A DNA stretch of 64,000 bases from Scyliorhinus canicula (GCF_902713615.1 NC_052154.1:91891030-91955029); one strand, 5' to 3'. Shown: positions 14,796 to 55,777, counted from the stretch's first letter. Notes: a model not told the origin generated them from the letters alone. Numbers and translations: made by a program.

Positions 14796-15026
14796 ATGTT
14801 CAGAAGCATGATTCACTGCATGATAATTTTCTCATGGGCTGGTTTAGCTCACTTGGTTAAATCGTTGGCTTTTAAATCAGACCAAGTAGGCCAGCAGCAC
14901 GATTCGATTCCCGTAACAGCCTCCCCGAACAGGCGCCGGAATGTGGCGACTAGGGGATTTTCACAGTAACTTAATTGAAGCCTACACGCGACAATAAACG
15001 CTTTTCATTTCATTTAATTTTCAAAG
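14796..15026 (+). pseudogene. IgSF gene A leader exon, interrupted by a SINE
   Basis: Removing the SINE at 14836-about 15014 gives MFRSMIHCMIIFSLIFK+G and a phase-1 donor AAAG|gtacat at 15026/15027, matching the phase-1 acceptor at 15251/15252. Confidence 0.6.
14836..15014 (+). mobile_element. Second tRNA-derived SINE family (GGGCTGGTTTAGC head, (tttca)n tail)
   Basis: Same sequence as the copies at 25582-25767, 32191-32358 and 40961-41137. Confidence 0.9.
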
Positions 15027-15251
15027 GTACATTGCTACTGCAGCAATCTTTCCACTGCAGCAATCTTTCCACTGCATGAACGCATTTCATTGCGCTCATT
15101 GGTGAAACGTTCAATTTTAGCATTTTTCTGCCCTGTTATTTCTCAGTAGACATATGTACTTTCAAACTATTTTCTATTTGTTTGTCAGCTAGGCTGAGTA
15201 TTTCGATGTTTGTTTCTTTAATGTTGAGTTTAATACTTTTTATTTCGAAAG

Positions 15252-15574
15252 GCGCTCGCAACTCTCCATTCACTGTAACACAAGATGCGGAGTCCGCAGT
15301 GAGGAGAGAAGACTCTGTTGCCTTTTATTGCATAGATCCCATCTTCTCAGACAAGAAGCCAGTGAACGTGCATTGGTGGAGACATGGAGGGGAAAGATTC
15401 TTGAAGGAAAGTTTGGACAGCAGAATCCGGCTTTATTTCCTCAATCAGGGGGGAGCCGTTTTGCAATTGATGGACGAGAGATGTGAGAACGCGGGGATCT
15501 ATTACTGCAAAGTGACACACACAGTGGTCGTAAACGGCACCGGCACTAAACCGGACTCCAACACATCAAAATAA
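15252..15574 (+). CDS. IgSF gene A: unsplit VJ-type Ig variable domain exon (probable pseudogene, or secreted single-V ORF from ATG 15206)
   Basis: Acceptor ttttatttcgaaag|; FTVTQ...FYC...VHWWR...LQL...AGIYYC...VNGTGT; Cys-Cys spacing 58 aa. Clearly homologous to the V exon at 55273-55590. No canonical donor after the G strand; the frame ends at TAA 15572-15574. Confidence 0.85.
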
Positions 15575-15599
15575 AATGCGATATTTCCCCAGATCAGGT

Positions 15600-16090
15600 A
15601 TGAATTGGATCATCAAATGAGCCGGACTCTTTCTTCCTCACACATTTGTAGGTGGTAGAGATCTCGGCGTTGGAAGCTGCAGTTGCTGTGTACTTTCGTT
15701 GAGAAGGAACTCGGAAAATTCGTAATGTTGAGCGACACCGTCATCATGTTAAGTGATGGATGGTGTACCGAAAAAGCAATGTATGTTGGTTGATAGTTTA
15801 ATGCTGCCGGTGTCGCACTGCGATACGCAAATGGAGATAATTCTCTTACAAGCACAATGTAAATCATGCAGATGATTGAAAGTGTTGGGAGGGGAGTCAC
15901 GCGCCGTAATATTTACTGCGGAGCTATTTTTCGCCCAACGTGTTAAATTCTTACTGAAGCTATATTCCGACATTCAAGCACCAGCACGTTGATTGTAATG
16001 ACATTGACTGTCACTTGCAAATGATACACTAACCAGAGCCCATACCTATGGCATGATTTACATGGACTTTGCTTTATATTTATCAGGGTA
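15600..16090 (+). pseudogene. Possible degraded Ig constant-like remnant of gene A
   Basis: One frame gives LQLLC...GW...YANGDNSLTSTM*...IYC with several stops; TLTVTCK follows. The pattern is weak. Confidence 0.3.
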
Positions 16091-16214
16091 AACGAATTGC
16101 GAATGGAATTTAAATAAATGCAAAAAATTGTCAGTTCCATGCAAGGATGTGCATTCATGAAGAAACCGAAAATATGACACTGTGCAGTGGAAATTTACAC
16201 ATATGCGTTAGGAT

Positions 16215-17332
16215 TTTAATAATGGAAGATGAGGAAATGGCTGAGGAACTGAACAGTTATTTTGGGTCGGTCTTCACAGTGGAAGACACAAATAACATGC
16301 CAGTGACTGATAGAAATTTGGCTATGACAGGCGAGGACCTTGAGAGGATTGCTATCACTAAGGAGGTAGTGATGGGAAAGCTAATGGGGCTAAAGGTAGA
16401 CAAGTCTCCTGGACCTGATGGAATGCACCCCAGAGTGCTAAAAGAGATGGCTAGGGAAATCGCAGATGCACTAGTGATAATTTACCAAATTCATTAGACT
16501 CTGGGGTGGTCCCGGTGGATTGAAAATTAGCAAACGTGACACCACTATTTAAAAAGTGACGTAGCAGAGAGCGGGTAATTATAGGCCAGCAAGCTTAACT
16601 TCGATAGTGGGGAAGATGCTGGAATCTATCATCAAGGAAGAAATAGCGAGGCATCTGGATAGAAATTATCCCATTGGGCAGATGCAGCATGGGTTCATAA
16701 AGGGCAGGTCGTGCCTAACTAATTTAGTGGAATTTTGTGAGGACATTACCAGTGCAGTAGATAACGGGGAACCAATGGATGTGGTATATCTGGATTTCCA
16801 GAAATCCCTTGACAAGTGGCCACACAAAAGCTTGCTGCATAAGATAAAGATGCATGGCATTACGGGTAAAGTAGTAGCATGGATAGAGAATTGGTTAATC
16901 AATAGAAAGCAAAGTGTGGGGGAATTAATGGGTGTTTCTCTGGTTGGCAATCAGTAGCTAGTCGTGTCCCCCAGGGATCCGTGTTGCACCCGCGATTGTT
17001 CACAATTTACATAGATGATTTGGAGTTGGGGACCAAGGGCAATGTGTCCAAGTTGGCAGATGACACTAAGATGAGTGGTAAAGTGAAAAGTGCAGAGGAT
17101 ACTGGAAGTCTGCAGAGGGATTTGGATAGGTTAAGTGAATGGGCTAGTGCCTGGCAGATGGAATACAATGTTGACAAATGTGAGGTTATCCATTTTGGTA
17201 GGAATAACAGCAAGCGGGATTATTATTTAAACAATAAAATATTAAAGCATGCTGCTGTGCAGAGATACCTGGGTGTGCTAGTGCATGAGTCACAGAAAAT
17301 TGGTTTACAGGTGCAACAGGTGATTAAGAAGG
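16215..17332 (+). mobile_element. CR1 LINE ORF2 (RT) fragment, degraded
   Basis: DKSPGPDGMHPRVLKE, QHGFIKGRSCLTNL, DVVYLDFQK, LADDTK. Confidence 0.95.
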
Positions 17333-17339
17333 TCACAAG

Positions 17340-53356: not shown

Positions 53357-53419
53357 CTACGCAAATCCAGCAATAACATTGAAAATGATAATTAAAAGGA
53401 TAAATACTCGTCTTCTTAC

Positions 53420-53731
53420 CTGGGTCAGAACCAGTTACCAGGTGAACAGATATTTTCGGAGCCTGCAGCGTCGTATGGGACACCAGACAAGTGTAAGGTG
53501 TTCCTCTCAGGACTGGCTGTGACTCATGCAGAACACTTGTAGCTTGATAGAGACCTGCTTTATTCAAACGTTTTGTTGTTTGAATCCCGGTTATAATCCT
53601 GCTTGAACCTTTGTACCACTGCAAAGTAACATCTTCCGGGTAAAAGTCCACTGTTTCACATACGAGATGAAGATAGACGTTTGCATTTTCATCAGGCGTT
53701 TTCCAGAGTATGGTTGGAGTATGTGGAACAG
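53420..53731 (-). CDS. Gene B: intact C1-set Ig constant domain exon
   Basis: 312 nt, phase 1-1, acceptor ccattcaag|, donor CCAG|gtaaga; (A)VPHTPTI...LHLVCETVDFYPEDVTLQWYK...GLYQATSVL...YTCLVSHTTL. Confidence 0.93.
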
Positions 53732-54579
53732 CTTGAATGGAGTTCAGGGATAGTTATTAAGCAATGAATATATAGAAAATTAACACATCTCACAGCCAAT
53801 AATTCCACAAAACGCAAGAGTGTTGTTTAATTATTTTTCAAAAATGTTAACAATGGTCTACCTCTACGTATTCAATGATCTCTGAAGCAACCATGTATGT
53901 AAGGCTTTTAAAATCTCACAACCATCAGAACCAATATAATTTCTCGCAAACCGTGTATCAAATTCAAATGCCGTTTTGATTGCGATTTGGCAAATATGGC
54001 ATCCAAGAACAAATCCAATCCCTAAGCAATACGATAAGTGAAGGTTTCTTCCGTTTATAATTCTATGGACTCGTGGAGGGGTGTTGACCAAAATAGTCGG
54101 ACAGCTGTACTTTCATTACAATGGTGTTGAATATTTAACTCCATCCAGAAAAAACAAGGTTGAATTTATTTCACTACGATCTCACCTGAAAATATCTAGA
54201 GACCAGTATCACCCACGATAATTCCAGGCCAGTTAAATTCCGTAAATCATGGAATATTTCTTGAATCAGGCAACTGGAATGATCGTCTTGAAATTGTATG
54301 GATAAGTCTTCGGAAACAATAGAAAAACGGGCAACAAACGGCCGTTCACGTAATTTCACTTGGATGTTCTCAGGTATTTGCACGAATGGCCTGATGAAGA
54401 ATACTCCATAAATTCTCCCCATAATTATTTCGAAAAAAGCTGCCTCGAGTTCAATCCAAATAATACCATGTCGTACAAGCATTATAGCTTGTATTTTAAT
54501 AGTATTTTATGAGGAATTAAATAGTGCTTTACGGTAAACTAGAGGGACATCTCTGAGCAATGTCGCTCCTCCGAACTCC

Positions 54580-54900
54580 ACAGCATCCCTGCAGCGCAGA
54601 AGGATGTCATTTGGCCCATCGAGTCTTCGAATGAGCTACATATTTGCACAGTCCCATCCACCACGCCCAATCCCTTTAACCCCATAACCTAACTTGCAGA
54701 TCCCTGGACAGTAAGGGACAATTTAGCATGGCCAATCGACCTAGCCTGTATATCTTTGGACTGTGGGATGAAACCGGAGACCCACGCAGTCACTGGGAGA
54801 ACGTACAAACTCCACACAGATCGTGATTCCCGGCCAACATTAAATTAGTTTTCCTGGCGCTGTGAGGCAGCAGTGCTAACCACTCTGCCACCGTGCCGCC
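54580..54900 (-). mobile_element. HE1-type SINE in the V-C1 intron
   Basis: Reverse copy. Confidence 0.85.
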
Positions 54901-55272
54901 AACACAGTTAGTAATTTCCAAAACAACCAATTCTATTTTAAGGTTAAGCCATGAAATGCGTTTCACTTTTCTTCGGTATAACCTCAACATTTAAAAAAAG
55001 GTATGTTTTGATAGGCTTCACACATGGTATAAACCGAAACATCCCAATATCAGTTTTGGATTAGTTGAAATATTCTATTGGGTCCCTGCATGCAATTTCC
55101 AAATTGTCAGCTTTTGGGATTGCCGAAATGTACCAAATATTATAATTTTCTGAATTACGTTAAAGTAACCAAATATAGGACTAATAAAATCCACTTGACG
55201 CAATTCTGGTCGACCTTATATATATATATTTGAGAGAATAATCCAAACATTCCACCCAACAGTGATATTTAC

Positions 55273-55590
55273 CGTGAACAACAAATGTTGATCCAGTTCC
55301 GTTATTCATCCTCGCTCTTGCTTCTTTGATACCGCAGTAATAAATACCGGCATCATGCAAACGTACATCAAGGAGTTGGAAGGTGCTTTGCCCTTTCCTC
55401 TTTAAAACATGCTTCCTCATGTCTGAAGTCGGTTGCATAAATACATTTTCGCCGAGTCTCCACCAGAAAATATTCACTTCTGAATTATCAGACAGAGGAG
55501 TGAATGCACAAGTGATGGTAATATTTTGTCCAACCATCACAATCTTGTGTTGAGGTCTTTGCAAAACTTGAGTATCGGCATAACAATTAA
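55273..55590 (-). CDS. Gene B: intact unsplit VJ-type Ig variable domain exon
   Basis: 318 nt, phase 1-1, acceptor ctcttcccctctttcaaag|, donor CACG|gtaaat; VLQRP...GQNITITC...IFWWR...FQLLDVRLHDAGIYYC...NNGTGSTFVVH. Confidence 0.95.
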
Positions 55591-55722
55591 CTTTGAAAGA
55601 GGGGAAGAGAGAAAATATACAATCAATCAATTGAACATTCAAGATCTGAATTACAATATCTTATAGTTTTGTTGGAATAAACACTATCAAGGCTTCAAAA
55701 TAAAAATTAATGCGACCGATAC

Positions 55723-55777
55723 CTGTGCTGATCATCCCCAGGATCAAGGAGGACTGAAGAAGAGCGCGAACAATCAT
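55723..55777 (-). CDS. Gene B: leader (signal peptide) exon
   Basis: ATG at 55777; MIVRALLQSSLILGMIST plus a phase-1 donor ACAG|gtatcg; in frame with the V exon. Confidence 0.88.

Follow-up and report, generated by a model that had tools for sequence, protein, structure and literature searches.

A probable type I membrane receptor with a germline-joined VJ exon and a C1-set domain, from a chondrichthyan gene family in Scyliorhinus canicula

Results

A 64,000-nucleotide stretch of chromosome C9 of the small-spotted catshark Scyliorhinus canicula (here called the window) contains an intact, transcribed minus-strand gene, gene B, which in all likelihood encodes a type I membrane glycoprotein with a signal peptide, a VJ domain, a C1-set domain, a transmembrane (TM) segment and a short tail. 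It belongs to a chondrichthyan family of VJ-C1 genes, and its product is probably an inhibitory-type receptor. The window holds two homologous V exons with a germline-joined J, V-A on the plus strand and V-B, that of gene B, on the minus strand, in convergent orientation and ∼39.7 kb apart. The two share 34.6% identity across 81 amino acids (in-window tblastn, E = 1.3e-11 one way and 3.6e-11 the other) and the motifs SD..V.V.WWR.G, AGIYYC, and NGTG, with canonical cysteines spaced by 58 residues in V-B and 59 residues in V-A. In a whole-genome search, these were the only V exons in the window and the C1 exon of gene B was the only C1 exon; no second C1-like sequence was found anywhere in the 64 kb. 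A reading made earlier from the sequence only had described homologous VJ exons facing each other about 40 kb apart, one intact and one decayed. Positions, tblastn E-values, and shared motifs agree with the first point, and the second holds as well, given that gene B is open and spliced while V-A carries lesions and a C1 exon accompanies V-B only. The cluster outlined at that time started at 14796, which is the ATG of the V-A leader, and ended within the leader exon of gene B, at the second ATG of that exon.

Gene B consists of six exons (leader, VJ, C1, TM, and two tail exons) running from 55798 to 21164 on the minus strand, with AG/GT at each junction and an open frame of 326 amino acids, and its protein shares 90% identity with S. 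torazame XP_072322905. The leader exon (55723 to 55798) has an ATG at 55798 and a second one at 55777 and ends in phase 1. Exon 2 (55273 to 55590; phase 1 at both ends) encodes the V domain with its germline-joined J (ending in YYCGIKEARARMNNGTGSTFVVH); it matches the Pfam models V-set (E = 1.9e-7) and Ig_3 (E = 2.2e-8) and is 100% identical to the RefSeq-derived protein P0159. Exon 3 (53420 to 53731) encodes the C1-set domain (FYPEDVTLQWYK ... YTCLVSH; Pfam C1-set E = 9.8e-12). With the S. torazame orthologue P0151 as the query, tblastn located the next two exons, which have AG/GT boundaries and fitting phases: exon 4 (41362 to 41472) encodes a stalk and the TM segment (DIGPKFHLFTVGCVISGFVCLVLGVIIGRHCNLFNCM), which has no charged residue, and exon 5 (40772 to 40809; phase 1 in, phase 0 out) encodes a short cytoplasmic piece (VTAEDGSPACEET). 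Exon 6 (21164 to 21289), matched by P0151 (83% identity) and by Mustelus P0003 in tblastn, encodes the tail with a degenerate ITIM (LVYADP), an ITSM (TEYAAV), and the stop codon. An AlphaFold2 model of the ectodomain shows two Ig domains with a mean pLDDT of 89.6.

Gene B is transcribed, and its first three exons are spliced as modeled: spliced contigs of four runs join leader, V, and C1 at precisely the sites predicted, free of mismatches. Contigs from runs X7 (rec16) and X8 (rec22) splice 55590 to 55723 (leader to V) with 0 mismatches, contigs joining V to C1 do so at 53731-55273 with both ends of exon 3 exact, and the transcript reaches 5′ past 55850. Exons 4 to 6 are presumably used together with these in a single transcript. 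All sampled words of exon 4 occur (share, 1.00) in the RNA-like runs X1, X8, and X9; of the 2.5-kb stretch examined, these runs contain no more than an exon's worth and lack the introns, and X1 and X8 also yield spliced gene B contigs. The RefSeq model behind P0159 (330 amino acids) takes another path, splicing C1 to 46081-45989, 40852-40770, and 11082-10936 and skipping the TM exon, so that the product would be mainly secreted or otherwise nonmembrane. We consider this quite improbable: nothing corresponding to the alternative exons exists in the orthologues from seven other shark genera, all of which have a TM segment and an ITIM/ITSM tail, the TM exon of gene B is present in transcript-like runs, and the last exon of the RefSeq model (11082-10936) sits past the unrelated V-A relic.

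V-A is what remains of a dead gene from another lineage of this family, one that separated from that of gene B long ago. Its leader (MFRSMIHCMIIFS...; 14796 to 15026, plus strand) is split by a tRNA-derived SINE of ∼183 bp, at roughly 14836 to 15018, that matches other dispersed copies inside the window; in an alignment, the leader of the paralogue L041 reads MFRTMIHCMTISSFSCK(G), without the insert. The V exon (15252 to 15574, plus strand; V-A proper, 15252 to 15571) retains family homology up to 15553 (..NGTGTK). A deletion with its breakpoint at 15554 has removed the J end (LVVYG) and the splice donor, and the frame then hits a stop at 15572 to 15574. L041 retains NGTGTKLVVYG directly before the gt, followed by ∼3 kb that is missing from the relic. 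No C1, TM, or tail remnants of this gene were found within the window. The V-A exon is 56% identical to Heptranchias P0066 (E = 7.8e-36).

A chondrichthyan family of VJ-C1 receptors

Gene B is a conserved member of a family of nonrearranging VJ-C1 receptors that spans the chondrichthyans, forms chromosomal clusters, and is known in databases only by automatic names, and these are inconsistent in RefSeq (SIRP-like, Ig lambda-1-like, tapasin-related-like, CD276, NCR3LG1-like). In S. canicula, we found at least 36 V exons (36 to 40; profile E-values, 4e-39 to 3e-13) and ∼30 C1 exons, with most V exons paired with a C1. Essentially all of them are located on C9, at 80.45 to 81.33 Mb and at 91.76 to 92.50 Mb, the latter cluster including the window. 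These many paired exons agree with the earlier proposal of a clustered multigene family of nonrearranging VJ(-C1) IgSF genes. The V signature, WW[KR]xGE ... D[SA]G[VI]YYC ... NGTG[ST]xLxV with a single C1-set domain after it, is found in its V part in both V-A and V-B. Across 31 aligned V domains (alignment A1), W42, C27, C85, G97, and G99 are invariant, and conservation is 90% or more at W43, N96, and V104. Tail motifs recur as well: most long-tailed members have an ITIM and then an ITSM, which is the family consensus, and the gene B orthologues carry LxYAAL plus T[EH]YAA[IV], while short-tailed members also exist. Among the 60 proteins returned by a profile search and 30 further sampled clusters, all those with a V-C1 architecture come from sharks, rays, or chimaera, and sequence searches of limited depth returned no homologues outside these groups.

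To our two V exons the family tree assigns separate places. V-A and V-B fall into opposite halves (split support, 95), where V-A pairs with Heptranchias P0066, its orthologue, and V-B lies in a clade (support, 99) of ten members with one sequence per species, ranging from Hexanchiformes to Carcharhiniformes, plus a gap-flanked second catshark copy. Orthologues of gene B are present in eight other genera. Because of these positions, with V-B inside a clade of one-to-one orthologues, V-A and V-B are not a recent pair. They represent anciently separated lineages, gene B having one-to-one orthologues across shark orders. The birth-and-death evolution that had been proposed is reasonable at the level of the family, since this contains pseudogenes and near-identical recent copies.

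Comparison with known receptors

Since many members are automatically named [quoted passage not shown] the family could be a cartilaginous-fish (co-)orthologue of SIRP, in which case its members would be myeloid receptors of paired inhibitory and activating types that have one C1 instead of two. SIRP-beta-1 and SIRP-alpha give the top TM-scores by query (0.72 to 0.76), and the likeness extends to a nonrearranging V with a J-like G strand, a C1-set domain following the J motif, type I membrane topology, repeated L.YA.L ... TEYA.V pairs in long-tailed members, and the presence of short-tailed ones. We nevertheless regard this orthology as unlikely, as gene B has a single C1 exon versus the two C1-set domains of SIRP, identity is ∼21%, a SIRP V domain does not appear among the 60 top-ranking PDB sequence hits of V-B, and Ig light chains and B7 proteins equal or beat SIRP by E-value. 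The V domain of the family, found only in chondrichthyans, is not specifically SIRP-like in sequence. By the defining features, gene B is not a SIRP, having one C1-set domain after V rather than two. SIRPs also carry paired cytoplasmic ITIMs in the inhibitory form or a charged TM residue in the activating form; gene B keeps the ITSM TEYAAV, reads LVYADP at the ITIM, and lacks a charged TM residue.

B7, SIRP, and Ig light chains are not told apart by fold searches, in which the B7 family (B7-H6, CD276, PD-L1, butyrophilins), with its similarly extended two-domain V-C ectodomain, also ranks high. B7-H6 ranks second among the structural matches (Z 16.8; 192 residues aligned at rmsd 4.4 and 25% identity), and CD276 and NCR3LG1 occupy ranks 2 to 6 in AFDB Swiss-Prot. 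Together with automatic names such as “NCR3 ligand 1-like” and “CD276 homolog” and with the many NKp30-like genes of the S. canicula genome, this would fit a family of B7 ligands (B7H6/NCR3LG1- or CD276-like) coevolving with multicopy NKp30 on the MHC chromosome. However, the J-type NGTGSxLxV strand that ends the family V is canonical and nearly invariant, the tails carry the ITIM/ITSM pairs typical of receptors, and identity to B7 proteins is ∼20 to 25%, so that we attach very little weight to a ligand role.

The sequence-only reading had likened the genes to NKp30 and named synteny with MHC or MHC-paralogous regions as a check; gene B is not an NKp30 family member. The comparison does have some substance, in that the best out-of-family matches to the family V profile in this genome are NKp30-like and CD28/CTLA-4-like VJ exons, one NKp30-like exon on C13 carrying the J motif NGTGTxLxV. 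NKp30/NCR3, including the multicopy NCR3 family of sharks, likewise has a germline-joined VJ but lacks a C domain and lies on the MHC chromosome C13, in contrast to the C1-bearing family on C9. The 60 best PDB matches of V-B do not include NKp30, and the real NKp30 homologues are on C13, where control exons match human NKp30 first (E = 2.7e-15 and 6.6e-8). MHC-I exons are found on C13, and PBX and BRD markers are found on C4, C13, C21, and C25; the MHC, PBX, and BRD paralogon markers tested were all absent from C9. An identity of gene B with NKp30 is ruled out by the transcript contigs, in which V is spliced to a C1 exon.

Gene B is not a rearranging receptor either, as V through J is one germline exon up to the GT donor and the same exon appears in transcripts; no RSS lies between V and J in this uninterrupted exon. 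Resemblance to antigen receptors is found in both domains. Ig lambda gives the best Foldseek E-values (25% identity); the C1 exon is most like C-lambda, its best PDB stretch matches being Ig lambda constant and CH1 domains, and V is nearest to TCR V-beta plus J, as TCR beta V-J domains are the top full-length single-domain hits of V-B in the PDB (E ∼8e-6). In contrast to Ig and TCR, gene B has its TM segment and signaling tail on the same chain, and the position of the J interface Phe in Ig/TCR is taken by a conserved N-glycosylation sequon (NGT) in the family.

The nonrearranging, antibody-like shark genes UrIg and UrIg2 are each single copy, have 3 to 11 C domains, and are located in the MHC (class III) or in an Ig/TCR complex (PMC12227049). 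Like them (PDB 9dmx), the family is found in elasmobranchs and has a nonrearranging VJ exon, a split leader, and C1-type domain sequence thereafter. Gene B being UrIg or UrIg2 itself is ruled out by the single C1, the at least 36 V exons, and the location on C9. The VJ plus C1 architecture with phase 1 introns and the TCR beta and Ig constant matches would also suit a direct surviving relative of the nonrearranging VJ-C1 precursor of Ig/TCR, as proposed for UrIg/UrIg2. We find this highly improbable: the V-B E-values against TCR beta are modest and close to those for PD-1 and PD-L1, UrIg2 is structurally only at rank 46 (Z 13.7), and UrIg/UrIg2 are single copy with at least three C domains, whereas the family has dozens of copies with one C1 and ITIM/ITSM tails, on a different chromosome, C9, that is devoid of MHC-I, PBX, and BRD markers.

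A further scenario, to which we give scant credence, is exon shuffling, by which an NKp30/CD28-type VJ would have been combined with a C-lambda-like C1 into a V-C1 chain that expanded only in cartilaginous fish. The J motif NGTG[ST]xLxV is common to the C9 family and to MHC-linked catshark NKp30-like genes. If true, the C9 family would be a living nonrearranging side branch near the VJ-C1 precursor, dimerizing via C1 and not via V, and would record an exon-shuffling step long hypothesized in the origin of antigen receptors.

Teleost NITRs and PRARP are clustered, nonrearranging V(J) immune-type receptors with inhibitory tyrosine motifs, like the catshark family. Unlike the latter, NITRs are not known to have a C1 domain; V-C1 genes of the PRARP type were reportedly described in chicken by Fu et al. 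in 2019. PRARP genes (V-C1) of chicken and bony vertebrates are cited in PMC10751288.

Predicted function and dimerization

By analogy, gene B most likely functions as an inhibitory-type immunoreceptor that has kept its ITSM and has a degenerate ITIM. Its V domain would bind a putative ligand, upon which phosphorylation of the tail tyrosines could bring in phosphatases or adaptors with SH2 domains, and this recruitment might dampen or modulate leukocyte activation, as for SIRP-alpha, PD-1, and NITRs. The proximal ITIM has lost its hydrophobic residue at position +3 (LVYADP) in both Scyliorhinus species, leaving the C-terminal ITSM as the sole canonical tail motif; inhibitory signaling may therefore be weakened or rewired. 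We infer such signaling, a role in immune cells, and dimerization from these features and from structure prediction. A gene B homodimer via the C1 domain is predicted with a score of 0.41, compared to 0.03 for the best control; contacts agree by at least 96% between runs, and partner pLDDT is at least 84. The mark passed here was reached by 21 of 30 microbial proteins solved as one-chain pairs and by none of 23 single chains; among eukaryotic proteins, 17 of 29 pairs passed it (7 of 16 in animals), as did only 1 of 7 that lacked an earlier solved relative and none of 30 single chains. The pass could stem from Ig-like complexes already known to the predictor. The predicted interface involves only C1 strands C, C′, F, and G and differs from the canonical ABED C1-C1 face.

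A repeated segment

The part of the window from 45168 to 64000 is repeated, with a second copy at +34342 bp (97.8 to 99.7% identity) that immediately follows a 100-N assembly gap outside the window. The leader, V, and C1 exons of gene B occur again in this repeat, the second V-B lying at C9:91980625-91980939 with 98% amino acid identity.

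A chondrichthyan V-C1 receptor family in two clusters on chromosome C9

The window corresponds to C9:91891030-91955029 of the 4.22-Gb catshark genome. Genome-wide searches with either V exon, the C1 exon, or a family V profile placed just two V exons and one C1 exon of the family in it. V-B, the V exon of gene B, lies on the minus strand at 55273-55590, and V-A, the relic V exon of gene A, on the plus strand at 15252-15571. The two are convergent across a gap of about 39.7 kb and share 34.6% identity across 81 residues (E about 1e-11), with a canonical cysteine spacing of 58 and 59 residues, respectively. 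The sequence-only reading had described two homologous V exons facing each other, and the motifs that it named are indeed present; overall, its observations held, while its interpretation was upheld only in part, as detailed below.

A profile of 31 V domains retrieved 36 to 40 family V exons on C9 with E values from 4e-39 to 3e-13, after which the score dropped sharply. These exons form two clusters (80.45-81.33 Mb and 91.76-92.50 Mb) plus one exon at 74.2 Mb, and about 30 C1 exons adjoin them. V-B had 290 matches at E ≤ 0.001, 69 of them at E ≤ 1e-10, in an exhaustive HMMER search of 1.84 billion representative proteins. Among 30 clusters of these matches checked by name, every V-C1 architecture was chondrichthyan, and the sole clusters from other animals were turtle and viper proteins with multiple V domains and no C1. 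All 60 proteins returned by a profile search of a 5.8-billion-protein collection came from sharks, rays, skates or chimaeras. Long-tailed members carry an L.YA.L motif (ITIM) followed by TEYA.[VI] (ITSM), at times repeated, and other members are short-tailed.

The source names of these proteins are automatic and contradictory, including SIRP-like, Ig lambda-1 light chain-like, tapasin-related-like, CD276 homolog, NCR3 ligand 1-like, MHC class II-like, TCR beta-like and PD-L1-like. We found no description of the family in the searchable literature, where it seems to be unstudied. Its genes are already annotated, and the window is thus a refinement rather than a discovery. In current models, antibodies and T-cell receptors were built from non-rearranging V(J)-C1 genes, and cartilaginous fish are the oldest lineage with an antibody/T-cell receptor system. 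What the window adds is a cleanly resolved, transcribed family member with one-to-one orthologues across sharks, a pseudogene of a second lineage dated by its lesions (V-A), and a control that distinguishes the family from the genuine NKp30 genes, which in the catshark genome are MHC-linked.

Gene B is an intact, transcribed six-exon gene

Gene B is a solid gene call of the non-rearranging V-C1 immunoreceptor kind. Its leader exon (55798-55723, minus strand) ends in phase 1 and is separated by a 132-bp intron from V-B (Pfam V-set E = 1.9e-7), which is unbroken through a J-type strand, NNGTGSTFVVH, up to a GT donor. Next comes the C1-set exon, at 53731-53420 (E = 9.8e-12 for Pfam C1-set). The 3′ exons, all on the same strand, were mapped with the Scyliorhinus torazame orthologue XP_072322905, named “CD276 antigen homolog,” as a guide: a stalk and transmembrane (TM) exon at 41472-41362, exon 5 at 40809-40772, and the exon for the tail and stop at 21289-21164. 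All six exons have AG/GT boundaries, and together they give a spliced open frame of 326 amino acids with 90% identity to the torazame protein.

We aligned Logan contigs from four public runs to window positions 53300-55850. Two long spliced contigs (1016 and 1993 nt) join 53420-53731, 55273-55590 and 55723 onward with zero mismatches and GT..AG introns, and reach 248 and 739 nt further 3′ of C1. By joining leader, V and C1 exactly, these contigs show that gene B is transcribed and confirm the model for its first three exons. For the TM exon, sampled words were present at 1.00 in three runs (X1, X8 and X9), which had just an exon-sized share of the 2.5-kb genomic stretch; this word content supports, and does not prove, the use of the TM exon in transcripts. 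A dead second C1 exon just downstream of C1 (53083-53419) was considered and ruled out, with no C1-like match there at E up to 20; 53300-53385, the part of this segment checked for transcripts, had no contig cover. Within the V-C1 intron, positions 54590-54933 showed extreme contig depth in transcript-like runs, with many loose ends and short internal joints, a pattern that marks a highly repeated SINE-like element.

At this locus, the RefSeq-derived model P0159 (named “immunoglobulin lambda-1 light chain-like”) is identical to the window exons and shares the leader, V and C1 of our model. After C1, it skips the TM exon and uses minus-strand exons at 46081-45989, 40852-40770 and 11082-10936 instead, the last of which lies beyond the V-A relic, giving a product without a membrane anchor. 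Since no gene B orthologue in other genera ends in this way, we regard the P0159 end as a doubtful model or a minor isoform. The RefSeq names of the family genes and this one RefSeq model are shown to be unreliable.

Predicted features of the gene B receptor

The gene B protein has a signal peptide, one C1 domain, a TM segment that is hydrophobic and contains no charged residue, and a tail of 59 residues with TEYAAVK at its C terminus. Two N-glycosylation sequons, NIT and NGT, are found in the V domain, the latter in the J strand. Gene B probably encodes an inhibitory or modulatory immunoreceptor whose V domain would bind a ligand and whose tail tyrosines, once phosphorylated, would recruit SH2 phosphatases or adaptors.

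A homodimer prediction scored 0.41, compared with 0.03 for the best control. This is above the tool's mark, which among microbes is reached by 21 of 30 solved one-chain pairs and 0 of 23 solved single chains, and among eukaryotes by 17 of 29 pairs (7 of 16 for animals; 1 of 7 for those without an older solved relative) and 0 of 30 single chains. At least 96% of contacts recur between runs, with a partner pLDDT of at least 84. Every predicted contact falls in the C, C′, F or G strand of C1 and none joins V to V, which would fit the nearly invariant NGT sequon at the place of the Ig/TCR J interface phenylalanine. The predicted interface differs from the canonical C1-C1 face, and the passing score may be a memory of Ig-like complexes.

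Comparison with known immunoglobulin superfamily groups

Among full-length single-domain PDB matches, V-B was closest to TCR V-beta plus J (E about 8e-6), followed by PD-1 and PD-L1, and the best stretch matches of the gene B C1 domain were Ig lambda constant and CH1 domains. The C1 domain also matched UrIg2, with a whole-sequence E of 2.6e-11; the family differs from UrIg and UrIg2 in how many copies and C domains it has and in its linkage (UrIg features from PMC12227049). When the profile of 31 family V domains was run against PDB sequences, multi-Ig proteins (titin, Robo, contactin) came out on top, without discrimination between families.

An AlphaFold2 model of the gene B ectodomain (mean pLDDT 89.6) matched several groups at 17 to 25% identity, none of them clearly ahead. 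Ig light chains gave the best E values, and the best 50 Foldseek matches in the PDB were exclusively Fab light chains. Further matches were CD276, B7-H6 (Z 16.8), PD-L1 and butyrophilins, SIRP-alpha and SIRP-beta (TM-score 0.72-0.76), and Rst/Neph. In a wide structure search and in AFDB Swiss-Prot, B7, butyrophilin, nectin, SIRP and Ig chains ranked in a narrow band. Because the known groups lie so close together, the modelled fold alone cannot assign gene B to a family, and the spread of fold matches accounts for the mixed automatic names.

The family is neither NKp30 nor linked to the MHC

The sequence-only reading had likened the window genes to NKp30 and proposed checking for synteny with the MHC; membership of NKp30 and linkage to the MHC were not borne out. 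The best out-of-family matches of the V profile in the genome were VJ exons on C13, in two clusters of NKp30 (NCR3)-like exons at C13:13287606-13791403 and C13:30325966-30512578. Two of these exons matched human NKp30 first in the PDB (E = 2.7e-15 and 6.6e-8), well ahead of the rest, and have no family-like C1 within 7 kb. C13 is the MHC chromosome and carries MHC class I exons (32-65 Mb), a PBX gene and BRD genes, with the second NKp30-like cluster about 1.6 Mb from the first class I exons. This shows that the catshark has a multicopy NCR3 family linked to the MHC chromosome.

C9 has no MHC class I, PBX or BRD marker apart from one class I-like fragment. This fragment, at C9:107511373-107511878, covers both alpha domains, contains stop codons, and is the sole class I-like match outside C13. 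A genome search with Pfam MHC_II_beta gave zero matches anywhere and was thus uninformative. Since the true NKp30-like exons lie on C13 together with the MHC markers that C9 lacks, the C9 family is neither NKp30 nor MHC-linked.

The nearest detectable V relatives of the family are these NKp30-like VJ domains, one of which shares the J motif NGTGTxLxV with it, and a CD28/CTLA-4-like VJ domain at 40.8 Mb on C3. This ranking may in part just reflect the possession of a J strand; germline Ig V segments have none. The C3 exon (C3:40805017-40805337) ends ..YHCEVLVEIPPPVRRASGEGTLL, and its PPP loop presumably recalls the MYPPPY motif of CD28/CTLA-4.

V-A and V-B belong to old, separate lineages

The two exons were placed in a maximum-likelihood tree of 71 V domains, built by a quick search from only 106 columns, with SH-aLRT support values. 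V-B fell into a clade with support 99 that contains a single sequence from each of Heptranchias, Pristiophorus, Heterodontus, Rhincodon, Stegostoma, Chiloscyllium, Mustelus and S. torazame, together with a near-identical second catshark copy. V-A joined its own paralogue (support 96) and then the Heptranchias member P0066 (support 91). Because the two clades lie on opposite sides of a split with support 95, V-A and V-B are not a young pair; they are old lineages that are neighbors by chance, with the gene B lineage conserved one to one. The birth-and-death evolution suggested earlier therefore does not hold for this pair; it does apply elsewhere in the family, where near-identical catshark copies form groups and several exons contain stop codons. 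Gene B orthologues span an estimated >200 million years of shark evolution.

The gene B lineage has retained its ITSM. As its ITIM, six other shark genera have LxYAAL, whereas S. canicula has LVYADP and S. torazame has LVYAVP; speculatively, the resulting YxxP motif of the Scyliorhinus tail might engage another SH2 partner.

V-A shares 56% identity (E = 7.8e-36) with the V domain of P0066, a protein of 368 amino acids with V, C1, TM and a multi-ITIM tail. The nearest paralogue of V-A lies at C9:91874470, 32 kb upstream, with 87% DNA identity (C9:91874470-91874718 and 91880464-91880691; locus L041, 3435-3775 and 9459-9719). Compared with this paralogue, V-A is damaged in three ways. Its leader exon is interrupted at roughly 14836-15018 by a tRNA-derived SINE of about 183 bp; a deletion at 15554, where the paralogue reads NGTGTKLVVYG then gt, took the final J codons together with the splice donor and about 3 kb of intron sequence, so that the frame runs into a stop; and no C1, TM or tail sequence was found downstream in the window. 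The SINE, the deletion and the missing exons confirm that this copy is decayed, as had been proposed. A leader with its donor inside the SINE was dropped in favor of a SINE-interrupted leader exon, and the leader placed at 14796 is only the 5′ half of that exon. In the paralogue the J end is intact and a C1 exon is still present. This second pseudogene of the V-A lineage is itself frameshifted; it has a 4-bp deletion in the YYC region and Trp-to-Leu in the WW motif, and its intron contains about 3 kb of transposon sequence.

A repeated segment and mobile elements

The segment from window position 45168 through 64000 and onward (to the equivalent of 79409) is repeated 34,342 bp further on with 97.8-99.7% identity, as a tandem unit of 34,342 bp. 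The second copy runs from C9:91970539 onward (L044 5510-10000, L043 and L045), starting right after a 100-N assembly gap (L044 5410-5509). The repeat could be a very young tandem duplication; the end of the repeat unit coincides exactly with the gap, and we consider it probably an uncollapsed haplotig or contig overlap. Unless read depth supports it, the second copy of the gene B exons for leader, V and C1 should not be taken for a gene of its own.

Three mobile-element sequences on the plus strand were also noted: a LINE reverse-transcriptase open reading frame of 664 amino acids at 58257-60248 (RVT_1 E = 9.4e-14), a Harbinger-type DDE_Tnp_4 transposase frame directly after it at 60257-60997 (E = 3.1e-30), and a second DDE_Tnp_4 fragment at 4167-4718.
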